From the NCBI GenBank assembly GCA_964247055.1, contig OZ176053.1, positions 4,588,001 to 4,652,000 on the forward strand: a stretch of 64,000 nt of DNA, written 5' to 3'. The translations under genes and the position numbers were made by a program. Position 1 is the stretch's first letter. Each line of letters opens with the position of its first letter. This document shows, in pieces, positions 1,490 through 45,356 of the stretch. The notes below the pieces were generated by a model. The model had not been told where the DNA came from and did no database searches. It saw only the letters and a program-made list of their open reading frames with translations. Source of the stretch: Paragordius varius. Its lineage: Eukaryota; Animalia; Nematomorpha.

Positions 1490-4400
1490 CATTTTAAATG
1501 TCACAAACATATATCATATATGATTTGTCTAAATATATAATGTTACACTTAGGTTGGGCCTTTGATGTTTCAAAATATAATAACCAGCCCGAACGCTTAT
1601 CAATGCAGTTATTCATGATTATAAATATTAAATATATGTTTTAATCAAACCACTAAATTATGTAAAAGTATGATTTGGGTTTACTTTTAATAATATATTT
1701 TTTACTACTAATAAAAATTTACAAATTATAAAAAATTTTAATTTTATTCTGTTTAATTAAAGTTTTATTTTTTTATCATTTCCTTATACATATTTCACAT
1801 GATAAACATATTTATGGTTTATAAAACGGTCACATTTACGGTCATACATGCATTTATAACCGGTCCGGCCTAACCCAAATTTGAACCAATTTTGTTTTCT
1901 TAAATAATTTATTTTGCACTTTCAATATATTATATATATTTTCTCAGAGGCCCGAGAATTGGGAGTCGGTTATTACAAATTCAGTACGGATGAAGAAGAA
2001 CGTCAAAAACAGATGGCTGAATTCGAACGAATGGCTCGTGAGCGCGAACAAATTCGATCAAATAACCCTGAATTACAAGCTAAAATCCGTTTAAAATATC
2101 GGTATCCTTATAGTTTGAATATAAAATTTTTTATTTTTATTTACCGTTTTTAATATGATGTCATTAGTGTTTGAATCAGGGGTGTCCAACACAAATGGCT
2201 TTGAGGGCCGCATACACAAAATATGGACATTAACAAATATTTTATTAAAATTTAAACTTAAGACTGTAATAACTACTAGCTATTAATATAAATAATAATT
2301 ATTATTTCATTGCCGTGATTCGGCAAGACTTATTTTAAAATGTGTTATCAATTTTTACATGGATTTCGTAAAGTTTTGTATTTATTCTCGTGGGCTGCAG
2401 GGGTCGCATTCTGAAAACCCCTGAATTAATGTTTAAGCAAACTAGAATCCGATTAAAATATGTATATACCCTTATTTGAATATTTATTATTAATTTTGTA
2501 TTTCATTCAATTCCTTTTTATTAGGTAGCTAGCGTAAATCTCGTGCTGCTACGCAGCCCGAGGAAGTCCTTTGGCTTCTGGGGAGGGGGGGGGGGGTTCG
2601 ATGTTTTGGGTCTACCGGTTTTCCGGTACCAGATCACAAAGTTACATGAGGAATCAGTTTTTAGCGGGTAGCTCCTTACCCAGCAGCTATCATCAAAGAA
2701 ACGCCTGACTAAAATTTTTGCTTTTTAACAGGGAATACGTAGAATCCATATTGAATTTTTACTGTTTCATACCTAGGGCGAAAAATAGATTTAAAAAATT
2801 ATTTTTGTGGACTTTGTTTTTTGAAAAAAATGGCATTTTACGGGGGGGCGGGTAAAAAGAGGGCCTAAATCAAAAAAGTGATTCGAATATGTTCGGCGCA
2901 ATTGAAAATAAGTAAAGAAAAGTCATATTTGAAATTTGGTCCAACACGTTCTCCAGAAAATTGTCTCAAAGACTCGATTTTTGTGGACTTCTGTTTTCAA
3001 AAAAAACCCGTTTTTCACACGGGGTGAGCCCGAACTGGGGGCCTATTTCAAAAAAAAGGGCGAAGCTATTTTCGGGGCATTCATTAATAATTATATTTTT
3101 TCGAAGTTTGGATTTGAATGCTACCGGTTTTCCTGTACCAGATCACAAAGCCGGCATTTTCCATTTTTATAAATATATAGATTATGTTGAATTATAAGGC
3201 GTTTTTGAGGTTGGCGAGCTTATTGTTAGAAAAATATCTAATTATTTTTCGATTTTCTCTAATATGTTAATATCATTTTATTGTTTTCTATGGTTAAATT
3301 CACCCTTATAATTATTACATAAGTTTTTAAGAAATTGGGGTTTTAAATTCAATTCTGTTGTTATTTTTGATTGTGAAAATATAATATGTTCCCCGTCAAC
3401 TATTCATGTGCCGAGTGTTTATACTTAACTAGATTGAAAAAAATTGTTAAAATTTACCTTTTTAAAATTAATATAACTAAGGTAAATAAAATCTAATTAC
3501 ATTAAATATTTATATGGAAATAAGTTAGTATTAATGTAAATTCCCATTGGTACCATATTTTTTTTATTTTTATATGGATTCATACTATTTTTATAATACA
3601 GTGAAAAAGTGTTATCACACATGCAAAAACGTGATATAAAATATTTGACTGAAGAAAAGATTGAAATCCTAATTGATGCGCAAATTGATCGCGAACGCAG
3701 AAAGCGAGAGGACTTAATACGTATTTTTATAATTATTTTGTCACCGAAAAACAGAATATTATTATATACAAAATTATAAGGATGAAACGTTAATACTAAA
3801 AAATTATTTTTTTTAAAAAAAAGAACTTTTACACCTTGGATTTTTTTAGATAAACTTGATATTTAGATGATGGAATCTAATATACCTAACTTTATCTTTT
3901 ATTTTGCAATCTGAAACGATAAGCTATATACATAAAAAATCAAGATCAAAAAATATTTTTTTCGTTTATGCTATTTGTCTCTTTATAATTTCAATTTTTA
4001 TTGTAAAATATTTTGCTTTTAACTTTTTATTTTTTTAATTTTACCATTCAAGGGCGACTCATGGACGATAAGGAGGCATTTGAAGAATATAAAAAGGAAC
4101 ATCCTAGAGATTGGGACATTTATAAAATGCGAGATGAGTTACCGGAAGAACGAATCCTTGATATACCGAGACGGCCTAGCAAATGTAATAATACATTTAT
4201 TTTTTGAAAAACTTTGTGTAGGGATCGATTGTTTGACGGGTTAAAAAAATTATATCTTACTCTAACATCATATAAATGCTTACATAAACGCTCCTCATTA
4301 CCTGGCAATAGATGCTTTTTACTGTATAATGGTGTGTTGTACTAATATAAAGTGAATTTAACCATTTTAATTTGTTTTGGTGTCATAAAATAATTTTTTT

Positions 4401-9700: not shown

Positions 9701-11255
9701 TATATAAATTCATATTTAAAATGGGCCAAATTTTTATTATTTTGCTGATAAACTTGAATGCAAAAATTGAGGCAACTGTGTGCATTAAGTATAAAATAAG
9801 AAACTTCTGTCTAGTTTAGTTTTTAACTGTCATTTAAAAAATAATGTTTAGCGTTATAATCTTAAATGAAATTTTTCGCTATACCGTAGAATCGAAGTAG
9901 TTTCATATGGGAGTTTTTTATCAAAAATATTTATAATTTGGCTTATTTGGGTTATTTTATAAGATAAGTGCAAATAAAATTATATACATCCGCTTTGGGA
10001 GCAAAAAATATTAATTTTAACCTAGGGTCCAGTATATATATATATATATATATATATCAAAAATATATATATAGCAGCAAGTTTTTCATATTTATTTATT
10101 AGATCAGCTGTTTGTTAAAATCGGATTTTGTAGCCAGCCTAATATCGCACTCTAGATGTTAGAGTCCGTAAAACAGAAGTATCTACAGGCGAGGAAGGTT
10201 TTGAAATTAAATTTAAACAAAACAACTTTTTGGAAAGTAGTTTATCTACAAGTTTAGGTTTGATGTCAAAAACTTAAATAAAATGTTTTGGCCTACGAAA
10301 GATGAAAAAAGCATCAAAAAACTTTATTGATCTTGAAAAATACATAAAATTTGATGATATTAAAAATTTTTGCCCTCAAATTTGGATTAAATAAATATGT
10401 GCTTTTCGCCATAAATTTAAAAGTATGATAATTAAAATTATTTAAAACCGTGAGTCAAATTGTATCGAAAAGTATGAAGTACGCTTCTACGAAATTTAGC
10501 TAAAAAATAAATTATTGAATAAAGTATGCATTCTTTCAAAATGTTTATAATACCATAATCTAGCATATATTAAAAAAATATATTGAAATCTTGGCATTTT
10601 TCCATTTACTATCCCATTTCAGAAGAACGAAACAATTTGGGGCATTTGGAACCACATCCAAAAATTAATTTAAAAAATTTTGTTTTGCTTTCCAAAAATA
10701 GTATATCATATATACTGATGATATTTTTTGGAATAAAGCGTTAAGCTTTTAACACAAAAATTTAATATTATGTGCGCTGATTTTGCGTTTTTTTGATATC
10801 GATCGAACACCAAAATGCTAATACCTTCTTAAATGAGGCGTAGGTCCGAAAAATCATCAGGAGAGTTTTATAACTTTTATTTATCAGAATATATATATAT
10901 ATTATCAAGATATTTTTACGCAACCGATGTAGGACGCAGTATTACTATGTTAGAAATTGTGGTGTAGCATGATTTATTTTGTTAACATAAATTATACAAT
11001 ACACTTAATTTTATTTACAAATAAGTGTTATTGATAATCAAGTCATTATTTTTATTGTGTATTTATTAATTTGCTATTGCAGATATATCTATATTTACCA
11101 CATTAGGCTAGATAATCTTATGTTGTGCAAGTTATACCCTTATTCCAAAAATATTACATCATAAACTACATTTAAAAGCTAAGTAATATATATATACTAA
11201 ATTTTAATTTAAAATTATGGGTTAAAAACTTTTAAATTTTTGGACCCGCCTAAAA

Positions 11256-12420
11256 TCTATACATATTTATAAAAATGGAAAATGCTGGCTTTGTGAACTG
11301 TTTCCGGAAAACCGGTAGAGCCATTCAAATCCAAATGTCGAAAAAATATAATCATTAATGAATGCCCTGACAATAGCTTCCCCCTTTTTTTAAATTAGGT
11401 CTCCAATTCGGGCCCACCCCGTGTAAAAAACGGGTTTTTTTGAAAACAGTCCATAAAAATCGTGTTGAGACAATTTTCCGGAAAACGTGTTGGAGATTTT
11501 TTTTACTTATTTTCGATTGCGCCGAACATAGTCGGCTCGCTTATTTAATTTAGGCCCTCTTTTTAACCGCTCCCCCCGTAAAATGACATTTTTTCAAAAA
11601 AATTAAGACCACAAAAATAATTTGTTTAATCTTTTTTTCACCCAAAGTATAAGACCGTAAAAATTAAATAGGATCCCAGGTAGTTGCCGTAAAAAGGGAA
11701 AATTAGCGTTTCTTTGATGATAGCTGCTGGGTAAGAAACTACCCGCCAAAAATTGCGCCACTATATAGAAATTACGTTGTTTTGGAGCTATTTTAAAGAA
11801 AACTTATGCCATATGAGCTCATTTAAAGTTTGAAATATTACCCGTAACTAGGTAAATTAAGTTCAGGCCTTTTTTTATTAGCCGTTAATTGGGGCCTTTA
11901 TGCCCTAAAAATACGCCATCATATAACGATTATTTAGTGTTGAGGTATTTTTTCGAATATTCCATGAGACGATGGTCTCAAAGATGATTTCAAATATTTT
12001 CTCTATAAAGGCAACAAATTTAACTCAGCGCTTTTTCCTATAGGCCTATGGGTAGGGGTCTACCGGTTTAAAACTGAGAGGCCATACAAAAATAGCGTGG
12101 CTTTGGAGCTAATTTTCAAAAAACTTAAGAAGCCATACGAGTTTAATAAAGGCTTTAAATATTACCCATAAAAAGGTAAAAATTATAGTATAGCGGTTTT
12201 TTCTGTTAGCCGTTGGGGCCTTTACACCAGTAAATAATATATTAGTATGAATTCAAGGTTCTGAAAATCCTATGAGATCATAGCTATTAAATAATGTTTC
12301 GAAATAATCCACATATATGGATCATTTTACTAATCCCTTTTTTCAAATAGCCCCCCCCCCCCCCCCCGCCCCAGTAGAAGGACTTCCTCGGGCTGCGTAG
12401 CAGCACGAGATTTACGCTAG
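11256..12420 (+). mobile_element. Non-autonomous Helitron, copy 2 (1165 bp)
   Basis: A|TCTATACATATTTATAAAAATGG ... poly-C, hairpin, ATTTACGCTAG|T. Inserted at an A|T dinucleotide with no TSD. Carries two internal units of about 300 bp. Confidence 0.9.
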
Positions 12421-22100: not shown

Positions 22101-25100
22101 TTTACTTTTTTTCTTTTACGTGGTTTTTTAGAGATTTAAGTCATAACGCAATTACGAGATTGGAACAAAATGCATTCGAATACTTGCCTCAACTTAGAGT
22201 TTTGCGACTAAACGGAAATCAAATCAAATACGTTCATATTGATGCATTTCGTAATCTAGAATCGCTAATACATCTGTATGTTATTTATACCATTTTATAT
22301 ATTAATTAGACAGTGATCACTTATATGTGTTATTTGAAAGGATTTTACTTTATGAAATTTATTTTTTTCGTAAAATGAAATTACAAAAGCTATTTTATTC
22401 CTCTATTTATTTTTTAGTGATATGTCGTTCAATCAATTCACGGATGCTTTGGCACAATCCCATACTTTTCATGAAGACGAGTCATATTATACAGCAGAGC
22501 AATCCGAAAAGTCACCACAAAACCAAATTCAAAACCGACAGTCTTATTTAGGGAAATCTAGATCCACCCTAGTTACAAATGCATTATGCCATTTATCCTC
22601 CTTGGCCAAATTAAATTTAGAGGATAATTCGATTGAAACACTAGATATAAGTAGCGATAATTTGTGTTTAGTTAAATTGCTGTCAAATGCACAGTTGAAA
22701 ATATTTAATGCAAATAATAACCCCATAAACCGAATTCATACGGATTCAATATTGAATAATGAGCAGGCAAAAACTTTATGGCCCAATAAAAAGACTGATG
22801 ATACTGCCTTTGATAGTAAATTAAAAGCTTTGAATCAAACTTCTATCCTAACACAATATCCTTTGAGCCCAACCATAAAACAATTGTAATTTTCATATTA
22901 ACTATATAGTTTTATCCTAATATGTTATATAGTAATTGATAATAAAAGATTTTGATGTTTTAAGACTTAATTTCTGGCCAAAAGATGATAAAATTTAAAA
23001 TTTTTTTAAATATTCCATATATATATCTATATATATATATAGACGAATCAATACAACAATGTTGATATGTGATTGTGATACATTATTACAAGTTCCTTTA
23101 TGGTTTAATCCATGGATCACTGAGGAACAACAAAAATTTTCAGCTTTGTCCAATTTCAATGCTAAAAACACCGAAAAAAATGAACAAACACCATTTGGGA
23201 ATGGGTTACATTGTTTAGCGCCTTATCATTTAACTAATCTCAATGTTATGGATTTGAAAGCCATCAAAGAAAACTCTGAAACTATACAATCACTATGTTC
23301 TCAAATATTCTCAATGGATTCTCCGTCAAAAACAACGTTCAGTAATACTAATAGGGATGGTACCCAAATACATTTAAACCAAATTCCTAATGGAGAAACA
23401 AAGAACATTGAAACATTGTTACAATATCCGTCAACCAGTGGACAAACAAATTTAACACCAACTAATGATTTGACTTACCTGAAAGATGCACCACAACCTG
23501 AGAACCCACTTTTGGCTATTCTGGGAAAAATGGAGCAAAAATCAATGCATAAAAAGTTCGATTCATTTTTAATTATATTTTCAAAAAAATATAAAAAAAT
23601 CTAAATAAATATCTGTTTTGTTTTTTAGATCAAATTTGTTGACCGCATTTATTCCGTATGGCGCTGTTTCCATCACCCGAAATTCTGAACCAAAAATGGA
23701 TGTCATACGAGGTACATCAACTTCCAAAATTCCAATGATAAGAAAAAAATTAGATCAGCGATTTAATACAGGAAACGCCTTGATTTGTAATGCTGAAATA
23801 GCAGTTTTACATCACGAAAATCCTTTTATATCATTACCAAAAACTGGCAAAACCGTATATACTAAAACAAAAGGTATCCTGAATCCATCTTTGATGGATC
23901 AACATGAAATGCTTGAAGTAGTTTGGGAGAAGGGAAATCAAGTTATAGATGCCCGATTAGCAAGCAATGATCGACATTATAAAATTGATGAAATTTACTA
24001 TGTCAAAGAGAAAAGTTTTCAAAATGAATTTGGAAATGGTGAGCGGTATTCGCAAAATGGAACCGTACCTACCAAAAAATCTAAATTGAAAACGTAATTA
24101 TTTAATCTTTGAAAAAATGTATTGTTTCTCCTCAATGCTTTTTTTGGAATTTCTTTTTATTTTAGTTATGTTAATATATTTCTTACCAAATCTGTACATT
24201 TTTATTTAACAGATATGTCATTGGTATACGGAGTAAGCTATTACTTTATCCTATTGTTAATGATGTCCATAGTGGAACGTACAAATGTGTAGCACAATCT
24301 CGTTTTCTTCAACAATGGATAGAGGTGTATGGATATGAAAATTTGCCTCCATCCCTTTTTATGTACAATTTCGGGGCAGACTTGATAAATTCTGCGCCCC
24401 TAAATCAGAACAAAAACAACGGCAGACCATTTGGAACAACTGAAAATCAACTTTATAGGGCTGTTTCACCACGAATGCGGGTTTCAGTTCTTGTATCACC
24501 ATATCTTGTAACAAATAGTGATCCATTTTATAACACAATCAATAAAGACGACCATCTTACCCAAAATGACCACGATAATCTCGATAAATTTAATCAAGAT
24601 CAAGTGTATAATGCGGAAAAGAAATTGGTTGAAGCGCATAAAATTATGACGGTAAGGGTTGGAGGAACTGCTAAACTGGAATGTGCCGCTGAGGGAAGAC
24701 CTACACCTCAAGTTGCATGGCAGAAAGTTAGAAAAGTTTCCAAATCTCATAGACAATCACCCATGTCAGATTCTTTCAGGTAAAAATATCGATTAACATG
24801 TATAGTTTTTGAAAAATATGATGGTGTTTTATTATTACAATATATTTTTTTCTCGCACATTTAGAACGAAAGATTCGACTACCGAAAAGTATGAAATTGC
24901 CGATTTTCCTGCAGCCCGTGAAAGGCGAATGCGCGTAATTCCTTCTGCTGCCTATCTACATGCTACAACAAACATATATGATAATTTCAAAAAATTCGAT
25001 AAATTTCACAAATTAGATTTATCTCTAACTTCAACACCACCCGCACCCAAATACAATTACAGAAATGGCTATGAGAGCGAGACGTTTGGTGACACCCAGG

Positions 25101-27349
25101 CCGGGCAAAATAATTATGATATATCACCCGGAGCATTTTACATTACGGACGTGAAATTGGCAGATGCTGGAATCTATTTGTGCCGAGCTAGAAATAAGGC
25201 TGGGACCGCCTTGCTAAAATTAACGCTCAATGTTTTAGGTAGTATATTAATTTAATCAACATTCGCTAGGGCCAAAAAATGTATGTCTTTAATCACCATG
25301 TTTTTTGATGCATATAGAACTGCCGTTTGTTAATCGACCCATGACCGATAAGAAGTTGAAGGTTGGTCAAGCCGCAATTTTTGATTGCTTGGCTGGAGGG
25401 AGTCCGGCACCTACAATAAATTGGTTAAAAGATGGGGAGCCAATAGCTTCTTTATTGCTAAATCATAACACGCATGTACGCAGAAACAAGAATCACATTG
25501 AAAACGATCGTATGTTTCTAGCTGGTCAAGACAAGCTCTTAGTCATTCCACAGGTGACGGAACAAGATGCGGGTACATATGAATGCGTTTTACAAAATAC
25601 ACTTGGAAAAATTAGTCACACAGCAAGGCTCATTGTGGAAAAAGGTAAGAACAACCGTTTAATTTTGAAAGAGATGTTTGCAGCTAAGTGAAATTTTTGT
25701 TAATTGGTCATTTTTCATGAATATTATGACTCAAATTTGGATATTATATTTTTATATAAATTTTACGAGACATTTTATCTAATATCGTTATATCTTTTTC
25801 ATTTTCAGATAAATCACCAGCTTCAATCCTATCTGCCAATTATTTCCTCCAAGGAGGAGATCAATTAGTGAACCTATTATCTGAAGTTGATCGGATAGCG
25901 AATGCAACTATGAGCCAATCTCAAAGTTTTGCTAAGATGTCCAAACAACATCAACAACAACCGCGTCATCGAAAACCATCATATGATGAATGGGAAGATG
26001 ACATGTTAGATGAAAATGAGGAAGACTTATCAATCCTATCTAAGCCACGAGATGCAGTTCAACTCGATGATCCGAGTGCGGATGAATCAGGTACAAAATC
26101 AAATGCGCTTTTCAATTTTCATCACCCCGAAACTGCTAACCGAAAAAATGTCGATTCTGGCCCAATCGGCCAAAACTATAATCAGTTTAAAGGAATAGTT
26201 CCTGATTACGCTGGTGGCATTAGGAATGCGGAAAACTCTCCTTCAATAAACTCATTTTTCTCACAAGCTGGCCACAATGATCGAAGCGTTATTGCCCTAA
26301 TTGTTTTAGCCGTAATAACATGCGTGCTCCTGACATCTTTGCTATGGGCGGGCCTTATACTCCGCGCACGTAAAAGACGACTCAAAAAAATCAATCGTTT
26401 AGCTAATGTATCTTTTGATAGTAATGGTCAAGTCGATATAGAAAAAAGTAATCTAAATAATCTTGGATTTGGGAAAGGAGGAAAAACATTGAGTGAATTA
26501 GAAAGATTAGCTTACCAAATAAATGTTACAACTGACAAAATGGCAAATTATAAATCTACACATAATCATCCAAACTATCATCGTCTAAATCATATTAATC
26601 AAACAAATATTCCCGAATCAGAAAAATTTATATGCATAAAATCTTCAAATGTTTATAATCCAACCACAACTATTGATCGACATAAAAATAGCTTTAAGTT
26701 ACAAACATTTGCTCGAAGGTTTAAATTGTTCAAAGATCAATTTTTTATTCCAAAGCAAAAAACCAATACTACCAATGATAATTATTACCAAGATCTTTCT
26801 ACTCTCATGAAACAAAAATTACGATTCCCAAAAGCTGGAACCATATCTCCTAGTAAATCATCAAATTTTCCACTCACTGCCATCTACACACAACTCCCGA
26901 ACACACAAATTTCTCCAAAAAAATTTAGCATTTTCCAACCTGGATCACCAATTATACTATCGACATTTGCAAAAAGTAAAATCGCCTCCGCAAATACTAC
27001 TCCACAACATAAGTTAGTGAAAATTGACAATTGTAACACCGATTTTATGCCAAAAACAAATCACGATAGGGATTATGATTTATCAGCCATAATAGATGTT
27101 ACCTCAGGTTTAGCGCATGATCATGATGAAAAAATTCCAAATTTTCCAAATACTTACATAGATTCTCTCAAGAATTTTTCTGAAGACAGGGATTCTGGCC
27201 TAGCATTATGCCCTTCTTCCACAAATTCGGTTTGTTCCGACGAGTTAATCCATGGAAAACACAAAATGAATTTATACAGTAATGGAACATTAAAGGATAA
27301 AAGTCTGCATGATAAATGTACAAAATTAAAAGTTATAGATGTGAAATAG
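16152..27349 (+). CDS. LRIG: LRIG/lambik-family receptor: signal peptide, LRRNT, about 15 LRR, LRRCT, 3 Ig, TM, long cytoplasmic tail; 16 exons, about 1781 aa
   Basis: Exons 16152-16357, 16441-16512, 20027-20098, 20577-20648, 21020-21160, 21270-21413, 21634-21777, 21892-22035, 22132-22275, 22418-22885, 23043-23555, 23629-24045, 24213-24779, 24865-25238, 25318-25644, 25809-27349 (5346 nt, in frame). The LRR exons are phase-2, mostly 72/144 nt. LRIG-typical motifs: KRNNINKLMDGAFFGL, DFPAARERRM in Ig2, and TM ..VITCVLLTSLLWAGLI. Confidence 0.9.
20326..20486. mobile_element. Hairpin MITE family D (161 bp) in an LRIG intron
   Basis: TA|CAGTAGCGTATGACATAAAACAATATTAGTCCATAAAAG ... |TA, with near-perfect TIRs of about 65 bp. 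Confidence 0.85.
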
Positions 27350-28148
27350 TTTTTTGAGAGTTATAATGTAGTAACAACTATATGTTATTATAGCTATGTA
27401 TTAAAACCATACTGGTATTGTGATATATTTGTATATTTATCTTAAATATAATATATTTATTGTATATTCAATATATATATTTAAACAAATCAAATATTCT
27501 CAATAAATGACAATCTTTATATAACTAGCGATACAAGATACTTTAATTTTTTGCTAAAATTTACAATTTGTGGACGGAAGAGTAAAAACTCTTTGATTAT
27601 TGAAATCATTTTTCAATATAACTCAATATTATTTTAGGTCAATTATTTAATAAAAATTCAGTCGCTCCACATTTTACTATATGTATTGTTATAACAAAAT
27701 GGCATGAGATTTAATTACAGTATGAGTAAGTATATATTGCTAGAAAGTTATTAATTATTGCGAAAAAGCCTATACAACAAAGAGCAGTATTATTGGCTTA
27801 TAGTTATTTTTTTCACATTTTATTATTATTTATTAATAATTCCTTGTTGCTTATGCTATTTGGCAATAATTAATAAATTTCTAGCAATATATACATGCTC
27901 ATACTGTATTTACGCCGTTTCCGACCTGCTTCAATATGCCTAAAACACTTTATAGTTAATATTTTAACCATATGCCTTTTATCAAAAATAGATCATCGAT
28001 CGGCCTTTTTTTATAAACAAATTAAATGCAAGCTGGTAATGTTTTTATAGTAAATTTCTAATATAAGAAAAATTTATTTATTAGTTTCAACGAAAAATTT
28101 AAAATTATGCACTAAATTTCCGATTTTGATTAGGTAATTATTACTTAA

Positions 28149-28809: not shown

Positions 28810-30095
28810 ACAAGGGCCTAATTAAAGGGTACTTGAATAAAACCGCTCTACTCAAATTTTTGTGTTTTTACGGGCAATATTTCAAGCCCTTATCGAACTC
28901 ATATGGCATGATAAGTTTTCTAAAATTTGCCTCCAAAGTCACGCTGTATTGATATGGTGGCGCAGTTGTTGGCGGGTAGCCCCCTACGCAGAAGCCAATA
29001 TAAAAAAGAAATTCGAAATTTTTTTTTGCCTTTATAGGGGTTAGAATCATCATTCATTAATATTTTTTGGAAGAATGGCTTTAAAACTAAATAATAGTTC
29101 AATGTTAGCGCATTTTTTAGGGCGTAAAGGGCATGGTTAACGGCTTATTTAAAAAACCGCTCGACTTAAATTTTTGCCTTTTTACGGGTAATTTCAGGCC
29201 TTTATTAAACTTATGTGGCCTGATAAATTTTCTGAAAAATTAACTCCTAAACAACGCGATTTCGATATGGTGGCTCAGTTTTAGGCAGGTAGACCCAGAG
29301 ACTGATACAAAAAAGCGCTTGATTTAATTTCTTGCCTTTTTACGGAGAATACCTGGAATCATGATTGATTCATATGCTCTCATTAGTTTTTAGAATGCCT
29401 CAAAACTAAAAAATCAATCTATGGTGGCGGATTTTTCAGGGAGTTAAGGGCCTATATAACGGCTAATTTAAAAAACCGTACGACCTAAATTTTTCCTTGT
29501 TACGGGTAATATTTTAAGCACCTATTGAACTCATATGACCTGAGAGGTTTTCAGAAATTTAGCCCGAAAGGCACCCTATTTCGATATGATGGGGCAGTTT
29601 TCAGTGGGTATACCTTACCCAGCAGTCAATATAAAAAACTAAAATATTTATCTTTTAACAGGAAATACCGGCTCATTGAATTACGGTGTCATACCTGGGG
29701 TAAATTATAGATTAAAAAAATATTTTTGTGGACTTGGTTTTTTTGAAAAAAATGGCATTTTACGGGGGAAGCGGGTAAAAAGAAGGCCTAATTTAAAAAA
29801 GCGAGCCAACTATGTTCTGCGCAAATAAAAAAGGTAAAACAATCATATTTGAAATCGAATGGTCCAACACGTTTTTCGGGAAATTGTCTCAAAGACACGA
29901 TTTTTATGGACTTGTGTTTTCAAAAAAAACCCGTTTTTTACACGGGGTGGGCCCGAACTGGGGGCCTAATTTAAAAAAGGACGTCTTGGGGCATTCATTA
30001 ATGATTATATTTTTTCATTTGGATTTGAATGGGTCTACCGGTTTTCCGAAAACAGATCACAAAGCCAGCATTTTCCATTTTTATAAATATATAGA
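28810..30095 (-). mobile_element. Non-autonomous Helitron, copy 3 (3'-truncated, with three internal units of about 300 bp)
   Basis: 5' terminus TCTATATATTTATAAAAATGG at 30095 on the minus strand. The body matches copies 1 and 2. No hairpin or CTAG at the left end. Confidence 0.8.
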
Positions 30096-31229
30096 TAAAG
30101 CGTATTTTAACATTTTAAAGTATAAACATTTAATACTATAAAAGTTACTCAAAAAGCATTTTATGATTTTTCTTTTAAGGTGCCGAGCGAATTCGGGTTA
30201 ATCCTATGTTATTAAAAAAGAGCCATAAACTAAGCGTTATGAGAAAATACTGAAATTTTTCATTTTTTTTAAACTCTCATAAACAATTTTTTTACTGAAT
30301 TTTTTGCCAGCGTATATTTGATTCCTTCATTTTATATCATTTTACTGTTAAAATGTTGTAATTAAATGAAACAGAGGCTCATAAATATATGAATTTAATT
30401 TTAATCTAATGATTAGCAAAGTTGTAGCCATTTTAATTAATATATTAGTTTATAACAAAATTTTATAATAACAGATGACTTAAAATCAGTTCTTTGATTT
30501 TTTCCAAAAGGCAACGTGATCTCACATTTTTTCGGATTCTTAATAAAATATCAAAATTAGAAACCTCCATCTTTTCATTAAAATACAGTAACTTTATATT
30601 GGTGTGCTAACCACTACAATTGACTTTAACGGACGTTATGAGTGGAAAACTTTTCATGAGCGATAAATTGAACTAACCATACTCGCTTAGGATAATTATT
30701 TGACAAAGAAAAATAATATTAAAAAGCAAATTATATTCTCTATTCCGATCAATAAACCTTTATATCTAAAAACTCTGTTATCGTTATATTAATTTATAAC
30801 ACTAGAAACTTCGATAATTTTAAGTAAATTGTTATACGCATAGTTCTATTGGTTTTTTGACATTTAATATTAAAAAATGCAGAAAAATATTATCGAAGAA
30901 GTCAACCCAAAACCGATACTAGATACCATCTATAAACTTAATTTTTGCTAATATATATAATTTTATTGATTTATAATTCTAATTAATTGGATATACCTTT
31001 TCTGCCAATCCATAATTGATATAATTTAAAGGTTTCTACTCAAACCTTACCGCTACCTTATATGCTTGTTGATGATTTGAAAGGTAAAATATCATCAAAT
31101 AAAAAGCATTAAAAATTTGAATTATCAAAAATATCTGTAGTTTTACAAGGGTTTATTCATTTAATATTTCTTCTTAATTTAAATATGCGCTTTTAGTTCA
31201 TAACCTGATTATTGATGAACGCATAACAT

Positions 31230-35912: not shown

Positions 35913-38900
35913 ATGAGTAGCGGTTTGAAGAAAAAAACTCTTTTGAAAGTGATTATTTTAGGGGATAGTGGGTATGCTTAAGTTATATATGTATAGGGTT
36001 GGAAAAACATCATTAATGAATCAGTATGTGAATAGAAAATTTAGCAATCAATATAAAGCAACTATTGGAGCCGATTTCTTAACCAAAGAAATAGTTATTG
36101 ATAACAAACCCGTAACTTTACAGGTAGATGTTTATTACAATAATAATTGAGAAAAAAATTGAAGAAATATTTATATTATAGATATGGGATACAGCCGGCC
36201 AAGAAAGGTTTCAGAGCTTAGGGGTTGCTTTTTACCGCGGTGCCGATTGTTGTGTATTAGTGTTTGATGTGACATCTCCTACTTCCTTTAAATCGCTTGA
36301 GAGTTGGAGAGATGAATTTCTAATACAAGCCAGCCCACCAGATGCTCAAAATTTCCCATTTGTAGTACTCGGAAACAAAATTGATTTGGAGAATAGAGCG
36401 GTATTTTTTTGATATGATAAATTTAAATATGGTTCCTTAAATAATTTTGTATTTAAATAAGGCTCCTTAAATAATTTTGTTTATGTAGGAAACGATTTCT
36501 TTGTATTGTTTTTATATTTAACTATTATAATATGTTCTGTTTTTTAAGGATAAAAAGTTCCAAAGTTATAAGTCATATTAATATGCATTTTATTATAATA
36601 ATAGTAATTAAAATTTAAAAGTGGTCGAACTTTATAATATGTAAAAAATAATTTTATAAAATTAGGTTTAAAAATATGATGATATGAAAACAATATTTTA
36701 TATGAGTAAATTTATTAACTTATATAATTTATCATTTTAGATTATTTAAAATATGCCGGTTTATTCATATTATTTAAAAAAATTGTTATGACTCATCAAT
36801 AAATTAACTTTTGCCAACAAACCCTTTTTTGACGCACACAAAAAATAATCTTTTATACAACAGCATTCTAACCTTTTTACTGCGGACTTTTTTTGTAAGT
36901 TGACCCTTTTTTGTGCAAAATAAAGATATGTGACTTTACCTACTCTATGCTATAATTATAAAATAAAATGAATTTTCGACATTATTTTTGCTTAAATTTT
37001 TAGTTATATTAAAAACACTTTTAAAAGTTCGAATGCTGGAATTGGCCTAAATAGAAGAATTCTTTTGAATTTATTTTTCACTAGCGTGGATCTCGTGCTG
37101 CTACGCAGCCCGAGGAAGTCCTTCGGACTTCTGGGGGGGGGGGGGGGGAGGGGGGTTCGAAGTTTGGATTTGAATGGGTCTACCGGTTTTCCTGTACCAG
37201 ATAGCAAAGCCAGCATTTTCCATTTTTATAAATATATAGATTACCATAAATAATGTATTAATATCCATATATCTTTTAACATGCTATACATATGATAGAT
37301 ACTCCTTACTCAGCAGCTATCATCAAAGAAACGCTTGACCAAAATTTTTGCCTTTTAACAGGCAATACGAAAAATCTTTCTCAAATTTTTACAGTCTCAT
37401 ACCGTGGGCAAAAAAATACAATCAAAAAAATATTTTTGTGGACTTTGTTTTTTTTTGAAAAAAATGGCATTTTACGGGGGTAGCGGGTAAAAAGAGGGCC
37501 TAAATCAAAAAAGTGACTCGACTATGTTCGGCGCAATCGAAAATAAGTAAACAAAAATCATATTTGAAATTGAATGGTCCAACACGTTCTCCAAAAAATT
37601 GACTTAACCCATTTTTCACACGGGGTGGGCCCGAACTGGGGACCTAATTCAAAAAAAGGGCGAAGCTATTGTCGGGACATTTATTAATGATTATATTTTT
37701 TCGATATTTGGATTTGATTGGGTCTACCGGTTTTCCTGTACCAGATCACAAAGCCAGCATTTTCCATTTTTATAAATATATAGATGAGGATAAATAATGT
37801 ATTAATATCCATATATCTTTTAACATGCTATACATATGATAGATACTCCTTACTCAGCAGCTATCATCAAAGAAACGCTTGACCAAAATTTTTGCCTTTT
37901 AACAGGCAATACGAAAAATCTTTCTCGAATTTTTACAGTCTCATACCGTGGGCAAAAAAATACAATCAAAAAAATATTTTTGTGGACTTTGTTTTTTTTG
38001 AAAAAAATGGCATTTTACGGGGGTAGCGGGTAAAAAGAGGGCCTAAATCAAAAAAGTGACTCGACTATGTTCGGCGCAATCGAAAATAAGTAAACAAAAA
38101 TCATATTTGAAATTGAATGGTCCAACACGTTCTCCAAAAAATTGACTTAACCCATTTTTCACACGGGGTGGGCCCGAACTGGGGACCTAATTCCAAAAAA
38201 GGGCGAAGCTATTGTCGGGGCATTCATTAATGATTATATTTTTTCGATGTTTGGATTTGAATGGGTTCACCGGTTTTCCGGAAACAGATCACAAAGTTAT
38301 ATGAAAAATCAGTTTTTAGCGGGTAGCTCCTTACCCAGCAGCTATCATCAAATTAACGGTGGACTAAAATTTTGCCTTTTAACAGGGAATACGTGGAATC
38401 TTTATTGAATTTTTAAGGTCTCATACCTAGGACGAAAAATCGATTTAAAAAATTATTTTTGTGGACTTTGTTTTATGAAAAAAATGGCATTTTACGGGGG
38501 GAGCGGGTAAAAAGAGGGCCTAAATCAAAAAAGTGGCTCGACTATGTTCGGCGCAATCGAAAATAAGTAAACAAAAATCATATTTGAAATTGAATGGTCC
38601 AACACGTTCTCCGGAAAATTGTCTCAAAAACACGATTTTGTGGACTTCTGTTTTCAAAAAAAAACCGTTTTTCATACGGGGTGGGCCCGAACTGGGGGCC
38701 TATTTCAAAAAAAGGGCGAAGCTATTGTCGGGACATTTATTAATGATTATATTTTTTCGATATTTGGATTTGATTGGGTCTACCGGTTTTCCTGTACCAG
38801 ATCACAAAGCCAGCATTTTCCATTTTTATAAATATATAGATTACCCACATCATTTAAATTTTGCCATCCTAATAACGTTCATAAATATATAGTAGTAATT

Positions 38901-39609
38901 ATCATTTTTTAACGTCAAAATAGATATTTGATGATTTTTTTCCCTTTGATCGCAGAACATTTTTGTGCGATTGGCGAAAAAAGTTTTATTTACCTTTTTA
39001 CCGACCAATAATTATTAAGAAAGTATTTGAATTTAAAAAATGACTTATTTTCTTCCGCGTTCGCTACAAGAGGTTTGACTATATTCTTGTTTAAGCCTGA
39101 TTTCAAATGTTACTTTGTTTCCAGATGAGACATAAGTTTTTTGAATTATATGTGCAGTAAAAATATATTATTTTTGTTCGCAAATAATCGGTTCATTTAT
39201 GATAATGATTGACTATTTATCTAAACATATCTTGCACTTAGTTATACTCCATATGTACTATTCTTTTTTGCTTAAGATCCCACTCAAAAAAGCTCAGGCT
39301 TGGTGTAACTCCAAAAATAATATCCCTTACTTTGAAACAAGTGCAAAATCAAGCACAAACGTTGATGATGCATTTTTAACCGTTTCTGGATCTGCTCTGG
39401 CCCGTGAAATTCGCTCCACGGCTGACATTTTTAGCTATAACTCAGGTCTGGGGGGTTATAGCGGCTTATCCAATAATCAAAATGCCCAAAAAACTTTAAT
39501 TGATGGCAGCTCAGGATCTAATCCTATTATTAAATTGGGTGAGAATACTAATAATATGAGTAGTGGTACAAATCAATCTCCTTTCAAAAAAATTTGTTCA
39601 TCTTGTTAA
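35913..39609 (+). CDS. RAB7: Ras-related protein Rab-7, 4 exons, 245 aa
   Basis: Exons 35913-35971, 35997-36123, 36182-36400, 39277-39609. Motifs [80 protein letters not shown] and YFETSAK. Confidence 0.97.
37081..38840 (-). mobile_element. Helitron composite in Rab7 intron 3: a 160-bp mini-Helitron (37081-37240) plus three tandem body units with 5' termini at 37784 and 38840
   Basis: CTAG at 37081-84, hairpin, G-run, and TC 5' ends at 37240, 37784 and 38840. A near-identical duplication with 544-bp period gives the twin ORFs at 37292 and 37836. Confidence 0.9.
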
Positions 39610-40185: not shown

Positions 40186-43100
40186 TTAATCTAGGGGTGG
40201 TGGACGTTCAGGCACTAAAGAAGTGACAAAAGTCATAAAAATATATAGGACAGTTTTTGTTCCTGACCAAAATGCCGTCAATTTCTGATTCAGACATTGG
40301 ACTAGAGCAGTTTGTTGGGGGTGTGGTTGTACAAATTCGTTTTGCGTGTTTGTATTAGCATTATCATTAGTACCGGTTTTTGTGGATGTGATCTAATGAT
40401 ATTTCATAGCAAGACAAATATATACACTATGGTAGTATTTGTAATGGAATAAAAATAAATTATGTTAAGATAGGGGAGGGATTATTAGCAAATAATTTAT
40501 AGTAGAAAAACATACAAAAATTTAAACATGTTTTAACTTTGTAAATCTATATATATAGTCACACAAGCTAGTGTAATTATTTAAAAATATGATAAATCAT
40601 TAAAACTAAATCTGTTTTTAAACTAAAAATTTATTGGCGATATACCTTAACACGTTGACGGACAGTAGGAACAAGCGAAGTTCGAAAATTGACACTATAT
40701 GTTTTTGTGATTTTTAGAATGTTAGAAGTATAGTTTTACTCTTTCTGCTTAAATAAACTTAATTTTGATTAATTTAGTACCTTTATTTAAAGTATAAAAT
40801 GAATAATAAACAAATACATACCAGTATAGTTATATAAATAATAATAAATATCGTTAAACGTATCAATAAGAACTATAAATTCAATAGAAAACACGATCGC
40901 ACTACTCCCTTCACAACCACGTGCATACTAAATCTGCAACTCGTATAACAGGTGAAATATGAACTTCAACCTAAAAAGATGTTTTCAAAACACGACACTA
41001 TGCTTCTACGTATACGCCAGTAAGTGCACATTTGTGCTGCTATAGCCGTAGTGTCTAAAAACGACCGTTTCGTTTTGGACGGCTATAGCAGTCATGCCAC
41101 ATTGTGAACTTCGCTTTGACGGCTATAGCCGCAATTGTCCGTCAACGTGTTAAAAAAATAAAAGTATTTATGGTCTTTCGTATCAAAAACTTATTTAAAT
41201 TTTTTATATTCATGATGTTGAGTAAGGTTTAATAACCGGCTTACCAGGTACAAAATACAGTCCACGGTTATAACTAGTCAATTAATACCATGATACAAAT
41301 TATATTGTGTTTAATAAAAGAAAAATTTTGGCTATTTTTTCACGGTTAATTATATCTAATATTAAATTTTATACCATTATTTATATTATTTGATACAAAA
41401 ACATCAACTAACATGTGCTCAAAATCATTTAACTAGCTCTTTTAAAACAACCAATCAATGACCGATTTAAAACAAACTCAAGCATCGAGATTATTAAGAT
41501 ATATTATTACAGTTTGTTCATCATATTGTTGAGAAGTGGAGGGAACATCTGCTGCATTAGTACTTGAAGTGCTTGGTGGATTTTGTTCCATGTTTGGTTC
41601 CTGAGGGGCATTTCGGTTTTCAACATTATTGTTTTGATTATTCCTCAGTGGATTTCCCATTGGTGTGAGCAATAAACCGGCCTGATACCTTTATTCAATA
41701 ATAATATACAATTTAAAGAAAAAAAATCGCATAACAGCCAAATGAGGGCCTTAAATTATTATGCTAAATGTTTAAATTGTGGGATAGATACGAGTATATG
41801 CGTCAACATTTATAAATTTTATTTTTTATTAGGATGAACCACCACATAGATTACTACGTAGATTAATTGTTATTTTTTACAATAGCCTTATTAATGGAAA
41901 ATTTATTTTTTATTTGAAAGTTATTGCTATTACTATGAAACTTATATATTGAATAAAAAGGTATTTGGTTTTGACAGTGTTGTTGTTTTAATTTAAAATT
42001 GACATCCGAATCCAAGTGAAGCAATAAAAGATTTTAATATCAATAATTAACGATAATTGCTGTAAAAAGTAATAAAAGGCATTTTAAATGTAATAAATTT
42101 TATAAACCATAATGTATTAAGATTTGCCACCTTTTTAGCGATTTAACAAAAAATTAAAGTAATTAGGGGTGATCTTATAATTTTAAAATATATTCTTTTT
42201 AAAAATTTCGCATAAAATGCCATGGAATGCATATGTGTAAATTTGGCTCTAGATACTTTATTTATATAAAAAATCTCTTCGTGTTGAAAAGACACTAAAA
42301 AGTATTGAAGTGTTAGATTCTGAGATAATAGGGGTTTTTTTCAAAATTTATGCACATTTAAAAACCCACCTCCTCCAAAAAGGTATAATAAAGTGTTGTT
42401 AATCACATTACATAATATGGTATAAAAAAATATACTTACAAAAATATGAGTGTTGCAATCAGTAACACAATCAGGAATCGATTAACGCTCGAATAAAAGT
42501 ATAGGACTGTGAGGAGAAGGGCAATCCTCATCAATATATATCCATAATCCAACCAATCTATGTTGGGTCTCAAAACAGGCTGTCGGGCACCTTGAGCCGG
42601 AGGAAAATCATTATTGTTTTGATTTGGGTTAATGTTATTATTATTTAATCCATTGACTAAATTGTTAATAAAATTATTATTATTGTTATTCATATTAAGG
42701 TTATTGGGTTGTTGCGTTTGAGAAGAATTAACAATATTTGCATCGGCTGCTTGATTATTATTATTGAATGTATTATTCCTTGTTCCCATAATAGGTGTAG
42801 TCCACATATTATTATAATAATAAAAATTATAAAAATAGGGATTATAAAATGGCAATGGCATAGTTGTCATTTGATTTTGCGCCGCATATGGTGGAGGGCC
42901 AGCATTTTGATATAATGATGATAACTGGTGATAGGATGCACTATATAGCATCACAATATCAGAATATATATAAAAAACAATTTTTTTTATAAAAAAAATT
43001 TTCGGTTCAAAGCTATGAGCATTAGCGTTTACGTCTAAATGAATCAATACCAGAATTAACAGTTTGAAAGAAATCTAATCGTTATTAATAAACTTAAATT

Positions 43101-43949
43101 AATGGACAAATGATCCATCACAGTTTTAATTTAAGATTAACATTCCTAAATTTTTTTATTCTATATAAACTTGGTTAAGTAAGGAAAACTTTTTTATTAT
43201 TGGATAAAATAAATTGATTAAAATTAGAAAATTAAATATAGAGAACGGTTACCATGTAAATTATATGTAAATATATGAAATATTTCATAAATTACCAATA
43301 GGCAGCCCATGCATCATAATACGATCTTTGCCATATTTGATTAAACTCCGGCGAATAAACAGGCGTTGATATTTTTGCACTAAATTATAATCAATAAAAA
43401 TTATTATAAACACAAAACAAAAAAGTAAAATCAAATTTAATACTTAATTTTTTAAAAAGGATAAATTGGGACCAATTTACATACATATATAAAAAATCAA
43501 GATATTTATTGTAATTTTCCATAAATGTTGTAATGACATAATTGTCAATTTTTTTTATCCTTAATTCATAAAAAATAAAAAGAGATAATAATGATAATTT
43601 TAAAATATTATAAAAGACATAAACTTGCTAGTGTCATTTAACTTTTCTTTTCCAAATTTGTCAGCAGAACAAATTATGTAGATAAAATGTTGATCCATGT
43701 CCTATATACATAAGTAAAAATATTACCTCAATAAATAGGTCCTTCAAAATTTGTTCATCCTTAAGCAATCTACCCATGTATATTAACTTTTGTGATAAAA
43801 CTTCCTTAAAATTAAATATAACATACTGGATTATTGTAATATTTTTTAGATATTTGATGTTTCAAAGCAAGTATATCCCAAGAACTATCAACGATAATTT
43901 TGAAATCATCATAAATTGGAGATTTTAGTGTTATTTCTAATTCAGTCAT
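40186..43949 (-). CDS. HERPUD: HERP/HERPUD-like ubiquitin-like domain ER membrane protein, 7 exons, about 415 aa
   Basis: Exons 43949-43827, 43804-43727, 43701-43625, 43379-43296, 42940-42440, 41688-41511, 40392-40186 (1248 nt, in frame). UBL MTELEITLKSP..SWDILALKHQISKKYYNNPEVLSQKLIYMGRLLKDEQILKDLF; DWLDYGYILMRIALLLTVLYFYSSVNRF; C-terminus TFVTSLVPERPP (cf. TFFASLLPEGPP). Confidence 0.9.
40651..41149. mobile_element. piggyBac-like MITE family C (499 bp) in the last HERPUD intron
   Basis: TTAA|CACGTTGACGGACA ... TGTCCGTCAACGTG|TTAA: a perfect 14-bp TIR and TTAA TSD. Confidence 0.9.
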
Positions 43950-44012
43950 TGGCCAATTAAAAAGTTTATCGTAAAGGCCTAACTCGAATATATTATAATA
44001 TGATAAATAACC

Positions 44013-45002
44013 ATGCTGATTGAAGGCAGTAAATTCAATTTTGAAAATTTCAAGTGTACAAAAGTTTTGAAAACAATACCATCGATAAAGCAAATCAATT
44101 TACTTGGTTATTTTAATGATGAAAACAAAAAAGCAATAATCTTAATACGGAAGTATCCCTTTGAAACCGAGGACTCGAAAAAATTTTGTTTTAGCAAAGA
44201 TGTTAGTGATGTTAAAGTTAACGATATATATTCCAGTTTTACCATGTTATTACCCGAAAATTTATCAGGTATATGAATAATATTAGTACAGCTGCTAAAA
44301 TAAATGTGGTATATCCTGCCACTGAAAAACATATTTTAAAATATTCATCATCTATATTTTTTACATTCGTTGAAACCCCCAAAATATATTGCGATTATAC
44401 TTTCCCGTACTTACAATCTAATAAATTTGATTTAAAGGTTTTATTACTGATCCTAATAGTTTAGTGGGTAGATAATATTTTAGATGGATTATCCGAACAA
44501 GAATCAATCATTTTAAAGGACACAAATTTGGGTATTATTTTGCTTCAGGATTTAAGTTGGGACGGAAAAAGTTTGACGAATTTGCATATATTGGGCCTCC
44601 CACTTGCGAAAGGTATAAGTTCAATACGTGACCTTAATGATTCCCATTTGTCATTGTTGGAGGGTTTAGAACTTCAAAAAAATGTAATTTTTAAATGCAC
44701 ATTATATTTAGAATATTGCTAAAAAATATAACATATCAAAAAATTTGATCGAGGCCTATTTTCATTATCCTCCAACCTTTTACCACCTACATATTCATTA
44801 TACTCTTACAACAAATATTATGCCAGAAGATTCTTTATCCGGAAACAATGTTACTGCAGGACGAAACATATATTTAACGGATACCATGCAAAATATAAAA
44901 TTAAAATCGGATTATTATAGAAATATTTATTGCGCTACAATATATTTAAGTGATAATTCAGATCTTTTTCCGATTTTTAATATGGCCTCTGAAGGCGATT
45001 AA
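44013..45002 (+). CDS. DCPS: m7GpppX diphosphatase (scavenger decapping enzyme), 4 exons, 303 aa
   Basis: Exons 44013-44268, 44292-44437, 44465-44683, 44712-45002 (912 nt). Motifs NDIY, VVYPATEKHI, WVDNILD, DLSWDG, ISSIRDL and the HIT motif YFHYPPTFYHLHIH. Confidence 0.95.
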
Positions 45003-45017
45003 TAATGACACTCGTAA

Positions 45018-45356
45018 TTATTCCATATTATCGTGTTCGCGTTTTAATCTATTTGTGTATGTTCTGGAAACAAGATTCCAACTATCCATAAATCGGTCCA
45101 TACACATTGCCATACATTTCTATAATTAAATAAATATTTTGCAAACTTGTTCATAATTATCAAATGTTGCTCCTGGTTTTGTGATACATTTTGGGAAACA
45201 TTTATTAGTCAAATTCTAGCATATTATATATCTATACCAAACTTTTATTAATTCTTGAGCATTTTCTAACGCTATTTGTTGTTTTATCCCTTCTAATAAT
45301 GCTTCTTTTTGGGTGGAGTTTAATGCGTTTGTATCGATATCTCGGGGAAAATCCAT
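45018..45356 (-). CDS. TIMM13: Mitochondrial small Tim chaperone Tim13, 3 exons, 94 aa
   Basis: Exons 45356-45243, 45215-45147, 45119-45018. Twin CX3C motifs (CFPKC, CMAMC); [14 protein letters not shown] and [14 protein letters not shown]. Confidence 0.93.

Follow-up and report, generated by a model that had tools for sequence, protein, structure and literature searches.

Seven segments of 22 to 28 nt in three hairworm genes are very probably genuine GT-AG spliceosomal introns

Introduction

Can a segment of only 22 to 28 nucleotides (nt) be a genuine spliceosomal intron in an animal genome? The question is raised by a 64,000-nt stretch of the genome of the hairworm Paragordius varius (GenBank assembly GCA_964247055.1, contig OZ176053.1, positions 4,588,001 to 4,652,000 of the forward strand), which is referred to here as the window. 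Seven GT-AG introns of this size were predicted in three of its genes, a HERPUD-like gene, the gene of the scavenger decapping enzyme DcpS, and the gene of Tim13. The original prediction took them for real ultra-short introns and named Paramecium and dicyemids as precedents. Introns of about 25 nt are well known in Paramecium.

The precedent of the dicyemids also holds, but the myxobolid myxozoans, published in 2026, had been left out. In a survey of 51 animal genomes (September 2026), introns below 30 nt are reported only in myxobolid myxozoans and Dicyema (PMC13644364). The survey gives a median intron length of 27 base pairs (bp) for Henneguya salminicola and 22 bp for Thelohanellus kitauei and Myxobolus rasmusseni, and it cites introns of 15-16 nt in Stentor. 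For the myxozoans with equally short introns, it describes a canonical U2-type machinery with conserved U2 small nuclear RNA (snRNA) and U2AF (PMC13644364). In Dicyema japonicum, the mean intron is 38 bp in a genome of 67.5 Mb with 49% repeats (PMC6736024). A literature search that did not cover the initial report of a hairworm genome (Cunha et al. 2023) returned no paper tying Nematomorpha or hairworms to short introns. Introns go unmentioned in the Gordionus genome paper and in a comparative preprint on Mermithidae and Nematomorpha.

Results

Each of the seven segments has GT at its 5' end and AG at its 3' end, as does an eighth micro-intron of the window, intron 1 of Rab7 (35972-35996, plus strand, 25 nt), which is included in the counts of intron anatomy. 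In the HERPUD-like gene on the minus strand, intron 1 (43805-43826) is 22 nt long, is in phase 0 and leaves the join NNP/EVLSQKLIY, and intron 2 (43702-43726) is 25 nt long and leaves the join DLFIE/DMDQHF. DcpS lies on the plus strand and holds introns of 23 nt (intron 1, 44269-44291, phase 1), 27 nt (intron 2, 44438-44464, phase 0, join DLK/WVDNIL) and 28 nt (intron 3, 44684-44711, phase 0, join QKN/NIAKKYN). Both introns of Tim13 on the minus strand are 27 nt long and in phase 0; intron 1 (45216-45242) follows codon 38 and intron 2 (45120-45146) follows codon 61. Thus, all eight micro-introns are shorter than 30 nt (22, 23, 25, 25, 27, 27, 27 and 28 nt). The coordinates and lengths of the seven introns matched the prediction exactly.

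The effect of retention was determined by reading through each segment. The segments of 22, 23, 25 and 28 nt shift the reading frame, and the three segments of 27 nt, including DcpS intron 2, introduce in-frame stop codons, so that each of the seven has to be removed, as had been claimed. For five of the seven, including HERPUD intron 2, the GT..AG pair given above is the only one within ±30 nt that preserves the frame. The joins quoted in the prediction were also correct, and the spliced products are open and recognised by Pfam.

The positions of the introns were then compared with those in orthologous genes. Gordionus sp. m RMFG-2023, a horsehair worm, was the reference for HERPUD (2/2 introns), DcpS (3/3) and Rab7, and the snail Pomacea canaliculata (P0012, L002) was the reference for Tim13 (2/2). 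All seven segments and the 25-nt intron of Rab7 lie at the same codon and in the same phase as an intron of the orthologue. At the site of HERPUD intron 1, after the same Pro codon, Gordionus has an intron of 297 nt in place of 22 nt, and at the site of intron 2 it has 46 nt (join EVFKK/DDHSPY) in place of 25 nt. In Gordionus DcpS (P0178, L003), the three introns are 44 nt (phase 1, same codon), 41 nt (phase 0, DLT/WVYNVL, before the invariant WV) and 39 nt (phase 0, CIN/VISEKYN, before xIxxKYNI), at the sites of the 23-, 27- and 28-nt introns, respectively. The two 27-nt introns of Tim13 correspond to snail introns of about 400 and about 430 nt after codons 38 and 61, both in phase 0. Gordionus introns are also found at the same three joins of Rab7, with 58 nt, about 1.8 kb and about 7.8 kb at the sites where the window has 25, 58 and 2876 nt. 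Each of the seven segments is thus the positional homologue of an ordinary spliceosomal intron, which leaves little room for readings other than shrunken introns.

A Tim13 homologue of 116 amino acids (aa) from a Logan assembly (P0053) appears to read through an intron in frame at the position of Tim13 intron 1, after QELL. This suggests that the position is widely conserved.

The spliced products were examined for intact domains. The HERPUD-like gene (40186-43949, minus strand) has seven exons encoding 415 aa, with the start codon at 43949 and the stop codon at 40186. Its spliced N-terminus carries a ubiquitin domain (Pfam 4e-9), and its transmembrane and C-terminal exons match a 435-aa gene that adjoins Rab7 in Gordionus. 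The DcpS gene (44013-45002, plus strand; four exons, 303 aa) yields a product in which Pfam recognises the N- and C-terminal DcpS domains (1e-19 and 3e-20, respectively) and the HIT motif, HLHIH, is intact. In an alignment with DcpS from fly, sharks and two unnamed proteins, all three joins are free of gaps and are directly flanked by invariant residues. The Tim13 gene (45018-45356, minus strand; three exons, 94 aa) encodes a zf-Tim10_DDP domain (Pfam 1e-22) with intact twin Cx3C motifs, and the product is 57-66% identical to mollusc and insect Tim13 over its full length.

The tiny introns occur together with long ones. In the four modelled genes, 8 of the 14 introns are shorter than 30 nt; introns longer than 240 nt make up 4/6 in the HERPUD-like gene (22, 25, 245, 355, 751 and 1118 nt) and 1/3 in Rab7. 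The Rab7 gene (35913-39609, plus strand; exons 35913-35971, 35997-36123, 36182-36400 and 39277-39609) has introns of 25 nt, 58 nt (36124-36181) and 2876 nt (36401-39276). In both HERPUD and Rab7, the tiny introns come first and the long introns last. The third intron of Rab7 consists to 62% of a dispersed repeat of about 550 nt. The 2876-nt repeat-bearing Rab7 intron and the HERPUD introns of 245-1118 nt support the predicted coexistence with kilobase-long introns, which the prediction described as rich in transposable elements. The same repeat has several copies within Rab7 intron 3 and is also found at 2607-3184, 11254-11755 and 29595-30096, with 80-91% identity; similar short open reading frames lie near 47.1 kb and 57.8 kb.

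The presence of the segments in genomic DNA was examined in sequencing runs holding the locus. These runs, which represent at least three samples and come from two studies under two organism labels, behave as DNA, with similar depth over exons, long introns and intergenic DNA. The depth over the micro-intron segments equals that of their flanks. Contigs assembled from the runs cross all seven segments without gaps or joints (X2: 44157-44752, 43614-44089 and 45048-45318; X5, under another organism label). Assembly artefacts had been named as a finding that would overturn the prediction, and these independent DNA runs carry the segments.

Variation was evaluated on the best-supported 40 of 115 differences. 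In this set, the coding exons contain two indels, of 6 and 3 bases, and the remaining indels are mostly of 1-2 bases and lie in introns or between genes. Twelve of the 21 exonic single-nucleotide polymorphisms (SNPs) listed are synonymous in the spliced frames, compared with 20% expected from random changes (p ~2e-4). This set is not exhaustive, and it supports purifying selection on the spliced frames. Within the micro-introns, a +1 allele was found in the 22-nt HERPUD intron 1 in two DNA runs, and an allele of the 28-nt DcpS intron 3 combines a -1 with a +1 indel and leaves the length unchanged. The two coding indels, -6 and +3 nt at 42628 and 42672, are located in a low-complexity poly-Asn tract of exon 5 of the HERPUD-like gene.

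The splice signals of the eight micro-introns appear weak. Their A+T content is 74-86% (mean 80%), compared with 71% in the flanking exons, so the description "almost pure A/T" in the original prediction was overstated. The donor is GTA in 5/8 and GTT in 3/8, G stands at position +5 in 4/8, and the acceptor is TAG in 6/8; eight introns are too few for a sequence logo. The 27-nt DcpS intron 2 contains an additional AG at its positions 21-22 (44458-44459), which must be bypassed for the AG at positions 26-27. Use of the internal AG would give a 22-nt intron that breaks the frame. This AG follows a branch-like CTAAT motif by only 2-3 nt, and its avoidance would fit a selection of the first distant AG after the branch point, although from eight introns this is only an indication.

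A census of short introns in the whole window, based on open reading frames only, showed no enrichment of GT..AG over control dinucleotide pairs, because exons are short and stop codons dense at a guanine-cytosine (GC) content of 27%. An Rfam scan of the 64-kb window for snRNAs gave no match.

The lineage of the genome was also evaluated from the genes themselves. Among single-domain proteins, the best match of Rab7 is that of Gordionus, which is the only match covering 98% of the query, through a shared and unusually long C-terminal tail. When the last exon of DcpS was searched against 1.84 billion representatives, the top match was Gordionus DcpS (5e-16), followed by a match at 3e-10. Gordionus DcpS lies on the same chromosome as Gordionus Rab7, and there Rab7 is followed tail-to-tail by the 435-aa ubiquitin-domain gene, the same adjacency of Rab7 and HERPUD as in the window. 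The Rab7-HERPUD regions of both genomes are collinear by tblastx, and the GC content is 26.9% in Gordionus and about 27% in the window. Protein identity to Gordionus is about 87% in the GTPase core of Rab7 and 41-51% in DcpS. These results point to a nematomorph that is different from Gordionus and not very close to it. A dicyemid or myxozoan affinity was also considered, and was rejected on the Rab7 and DcpS matches and on the synteny with Gordionus.

Several further features of the locus were observed. The region from 43.6 to 45.4 kb is tightly packed with the three genes. The stop codons of DcpS (plus strand, ending at 45002) and Tim13 (minus strand, lowest base 45018) converge with 15 nt between them; the 3' untranslated regions of the two genes, which lie on opposite strands, must overlap. 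The HERPUD-like gene (minus strand, start codon at 43949) and DcpS (plus strand, start codon at 44013) are divergent, and the 63 nt between their start codons suggest a very compact bidirectional promoter. In Gordionus, the orthologues of these two genes are on one chromosome, 3.5 Mb apart. Ahead of its CxC prenylation motif, Rab7 is extended at the C-terminus by about 30-40 aa both in the window (245 aa; 39277-39609) and in Gordionus (234 aa; L001 20104-20409). Among the matches listed, Rab7 of other animals is mostly about 205-210 aa long and aligns only to the first 70-75% of the query. The extension may be a feature specific to nematomorphs.

Elsewhere in the window, a candidate GT..AG intron of 30 nt (987-1016) joins open frames of 40 and 102 codons in a gene adjoining RMI1. 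A large gene on the plus strand (22400-27350) contains immunoglobulin I-set domains and an exon of 493 codons without a Pfam match. Two partial matches, one a fragment of DcpS from a TARA ocean scaffold and the other a fragment of Tim13 from a Logan contig, were also examined and yielded no usable information.

Discussion

Very probably, the seven segments are real spliceosomal introns of the U2 type (GT-AG) that descend from ordinary introns at the same codons and became shortened to 22-28 nt in a nematomorph lineage. The core of the original prediction, that these are real ultra-short spliceosomal introns of an animal genome, is supported by the orthologous positions and phases, the gap-free joins of DcpS and the DNA runs.

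The following observations weigh against this conclusion. Formal alternative GT..AG pairs exist for HERPUD intron 1 and DcpS intron 1. A branch motif resembling yUnAy was found in only 4/8 micro-introns, 6-14 nt from the 3' end, and the other four contain only A-rich stretches in a context of 80% A+T. The runs holding the locus were all DNA-like, and the RNA-labelled runs of the species held a 0.00 share of its words. An exact look-up of the spliced Tim13 product, and protein searches for the spliced products of the species, found none in the protein collections.

From these sequences we infer the following course of events. Ordinary introns at these codons, such as those of 39-297 nt in Gordionus and of about 400 nt in the snail, would represent the ancestral state. 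The shortened introns would be excised from RNA, most likely after recognition across the intron (intron definition) and by an essentially canonical spliceosome. Such a spliceosome would have to tolerate a putative branch point that lies only about 10-16 nt from the 5' splice site. A weak GT[A/T] donor and a mostly TAG acceptor would suffice, and a separate polypyrimidine tract would not be needed. The same spliceosome would also remove the introns of 245-2876 nt in the same genes. Canonical U2-type splicing by intron definition, as proposed here, has likewise been argued for the myxozoans, where U2 snRNA and U2AF are described as conserved (PMC13644364). The original prediction had suggested, as an inference, that the spliceosome may be modified.

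One alternative accepts the introns as real and holds that they are spliced inefficiently or conditionally, with retention regulating expression as in the tiny introns of microsporidia. Every retained form would carry a premature stop, the splice signals are weak, and the internal AG of DcpS intron 2 must be skipped. The short introns of microsporidia have a splicing efficiency of about 25%, as cited in the myxozoan report (PMC13644364). However, these are housekeeping genes, and purifying selection acts on their spliced frames. Regulated retention appears unlikely.

A second alternative is removal of the segments without the major spliceosome, by U12-type splicing, by DNA elimination like that of ciliate internally eliminated sequences (IESs), or by translational bypass. 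A length of 22-28 nt is indeed below what the spliceosomes of model animals accept, which is established knowledge and is also stated in PMC13644364. However, the donors are GTA or GTT, and no U12-type motif (ATATCC or GTATCC donor, TCCTTAAC branch site) was found in the eight donors or interiors. The ends are GT..AG and not the TA..TA boundaries of ciliate IESs, and the segments are present at full depth in the DNA runs. The positional homologues are ordinary GT-AG introns of 39-430 nt, and the equally short introns of myxozoans and Dicyema are attributed to canonical U2-type splicing (PMC13644364). Removal by another route is therefore very unlikely, and the major spliceosome is the preferred agent.

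It might also be supposed that the three genes are decaying pseudogenes with random insertions, and that the GT..AG ends and the restored frames are coincidental. The genome is repeat-rich, and hairworms have reportedly lost many conserved genes, going by the title of the first hairworm genome paper. Against this, all three frames are intact outside the segments, with the DcpS HIT motif and the twin Cx3C motifs of Tim13 preserved. Among the listed exonic SNPs, changes that are synonymous in the spliced frames are overrepresented, and the listed exonic indels are multiples of three. Seven exact GT..AG pairs would arise by chance at about (0.0024)^7, as estimated from the base composition. We regard decay as extremely unlikely.

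That the segments are artefacts of assembly or sequencing, spurious short insertions in uninterrupted exons, has a negligible chance, for although long-read errors can in principle yield short AT-rich insertions, no observation supports this here, contigs from several DNA-like runs (two studies, two organism labels) cross all seven without gaps, and 7/7 have exact GT..AG ends at orthologous intron positions.

Shrinkage of real spliceosomal introns thus remains the preferred explanation, and it raises the question of when the shrinkage took place. We tentatively propose that, within Nematomorpha and once the Gordionus lineage had diverged, the minimum workable intron length fell from about 40 to about 22 nt. 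This would be a third, independent and datable animal origin of introns below 30 nt, in a large repeat-rich genome that keeps kilobase-sized introns. We consider this reading possible but rather doubtful. If it is true, the cause would be a changed geometry or recognition mode of the spliceosome rather than genome compaction, and the low BUSCO scores and "rampant gene loss" described in hairworms could in part stem from gene finders that are blind to such introns.

This kind of intron is already known, and hairworms would be the third animal lineage, an ecdysozoan one, with introns below 30 nt. The contrast within one phylum, with 39-58 nt at the same sites in Gordionus, allows a comparison of spliceosomes with respect to snRNAs, SF1, U2AF, SF3B and Prp8, and such a comparison bears on the factors that determine how short an intron can be. 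Because the same genes also hold introns of 245-2876 nt, genome compaction does not simply account for the extreme shortening. Such genes would be broken or dropped by gene predictors and by read aligners with minimum-intron defaults of about 20-40 nt. These defaults could bias estimates of gene loss for Nematomorpha.

A comparison within the phylum is offered by Gordionus itself. Its introns are found in the same genes, at the same codons and in the same phases; they are GT-AG and AT-rich, in a genome of about 27% GC. However, they are about 15-35 nt longer (44, 41, 39, 46 and 58 nt compared with 23, 27, 28, 25 and 25 nt), in one case 297 nt compared with 22 nt, and 0/6 orthologous introns of Gordionus are shorter than 39 nt.

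The introns of ciliates belong to the same length class, are AT-rich and cause premature stops when retained, but ciliates are protists with a reassigned genetic code, whereas the genes described here use the standard code and have animal genes as their closest relatives. Dicyema is a bilaterian parasite with introns below 30 nt at conserved positions, reduced splice motifs and a repeat-rich genome (PMC6736024 and PMC13644364). It differs in being spiralian, in its GC content of 36.7% compared with about 27% here, and in that long introns are rare (mean 38 bp).

The myxobolids are likewise parasitic animals, whose GT-AG introns of 22-28 nt occupy conserved positions and exist alongside longer ones (PMC13644364). 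The same source gives for them a donor reduced to approximately GTa and no clear polypyrimidine tract. They are Cnidaria with more compact genomes (about 20-200 Mb), in which the short class is the genome-wide median (PMC13644364), whereas the introns reported here come from one window of an ecdysozoan genome, where tiny introns lie beside introns of 245-2876 nt in the same genes.

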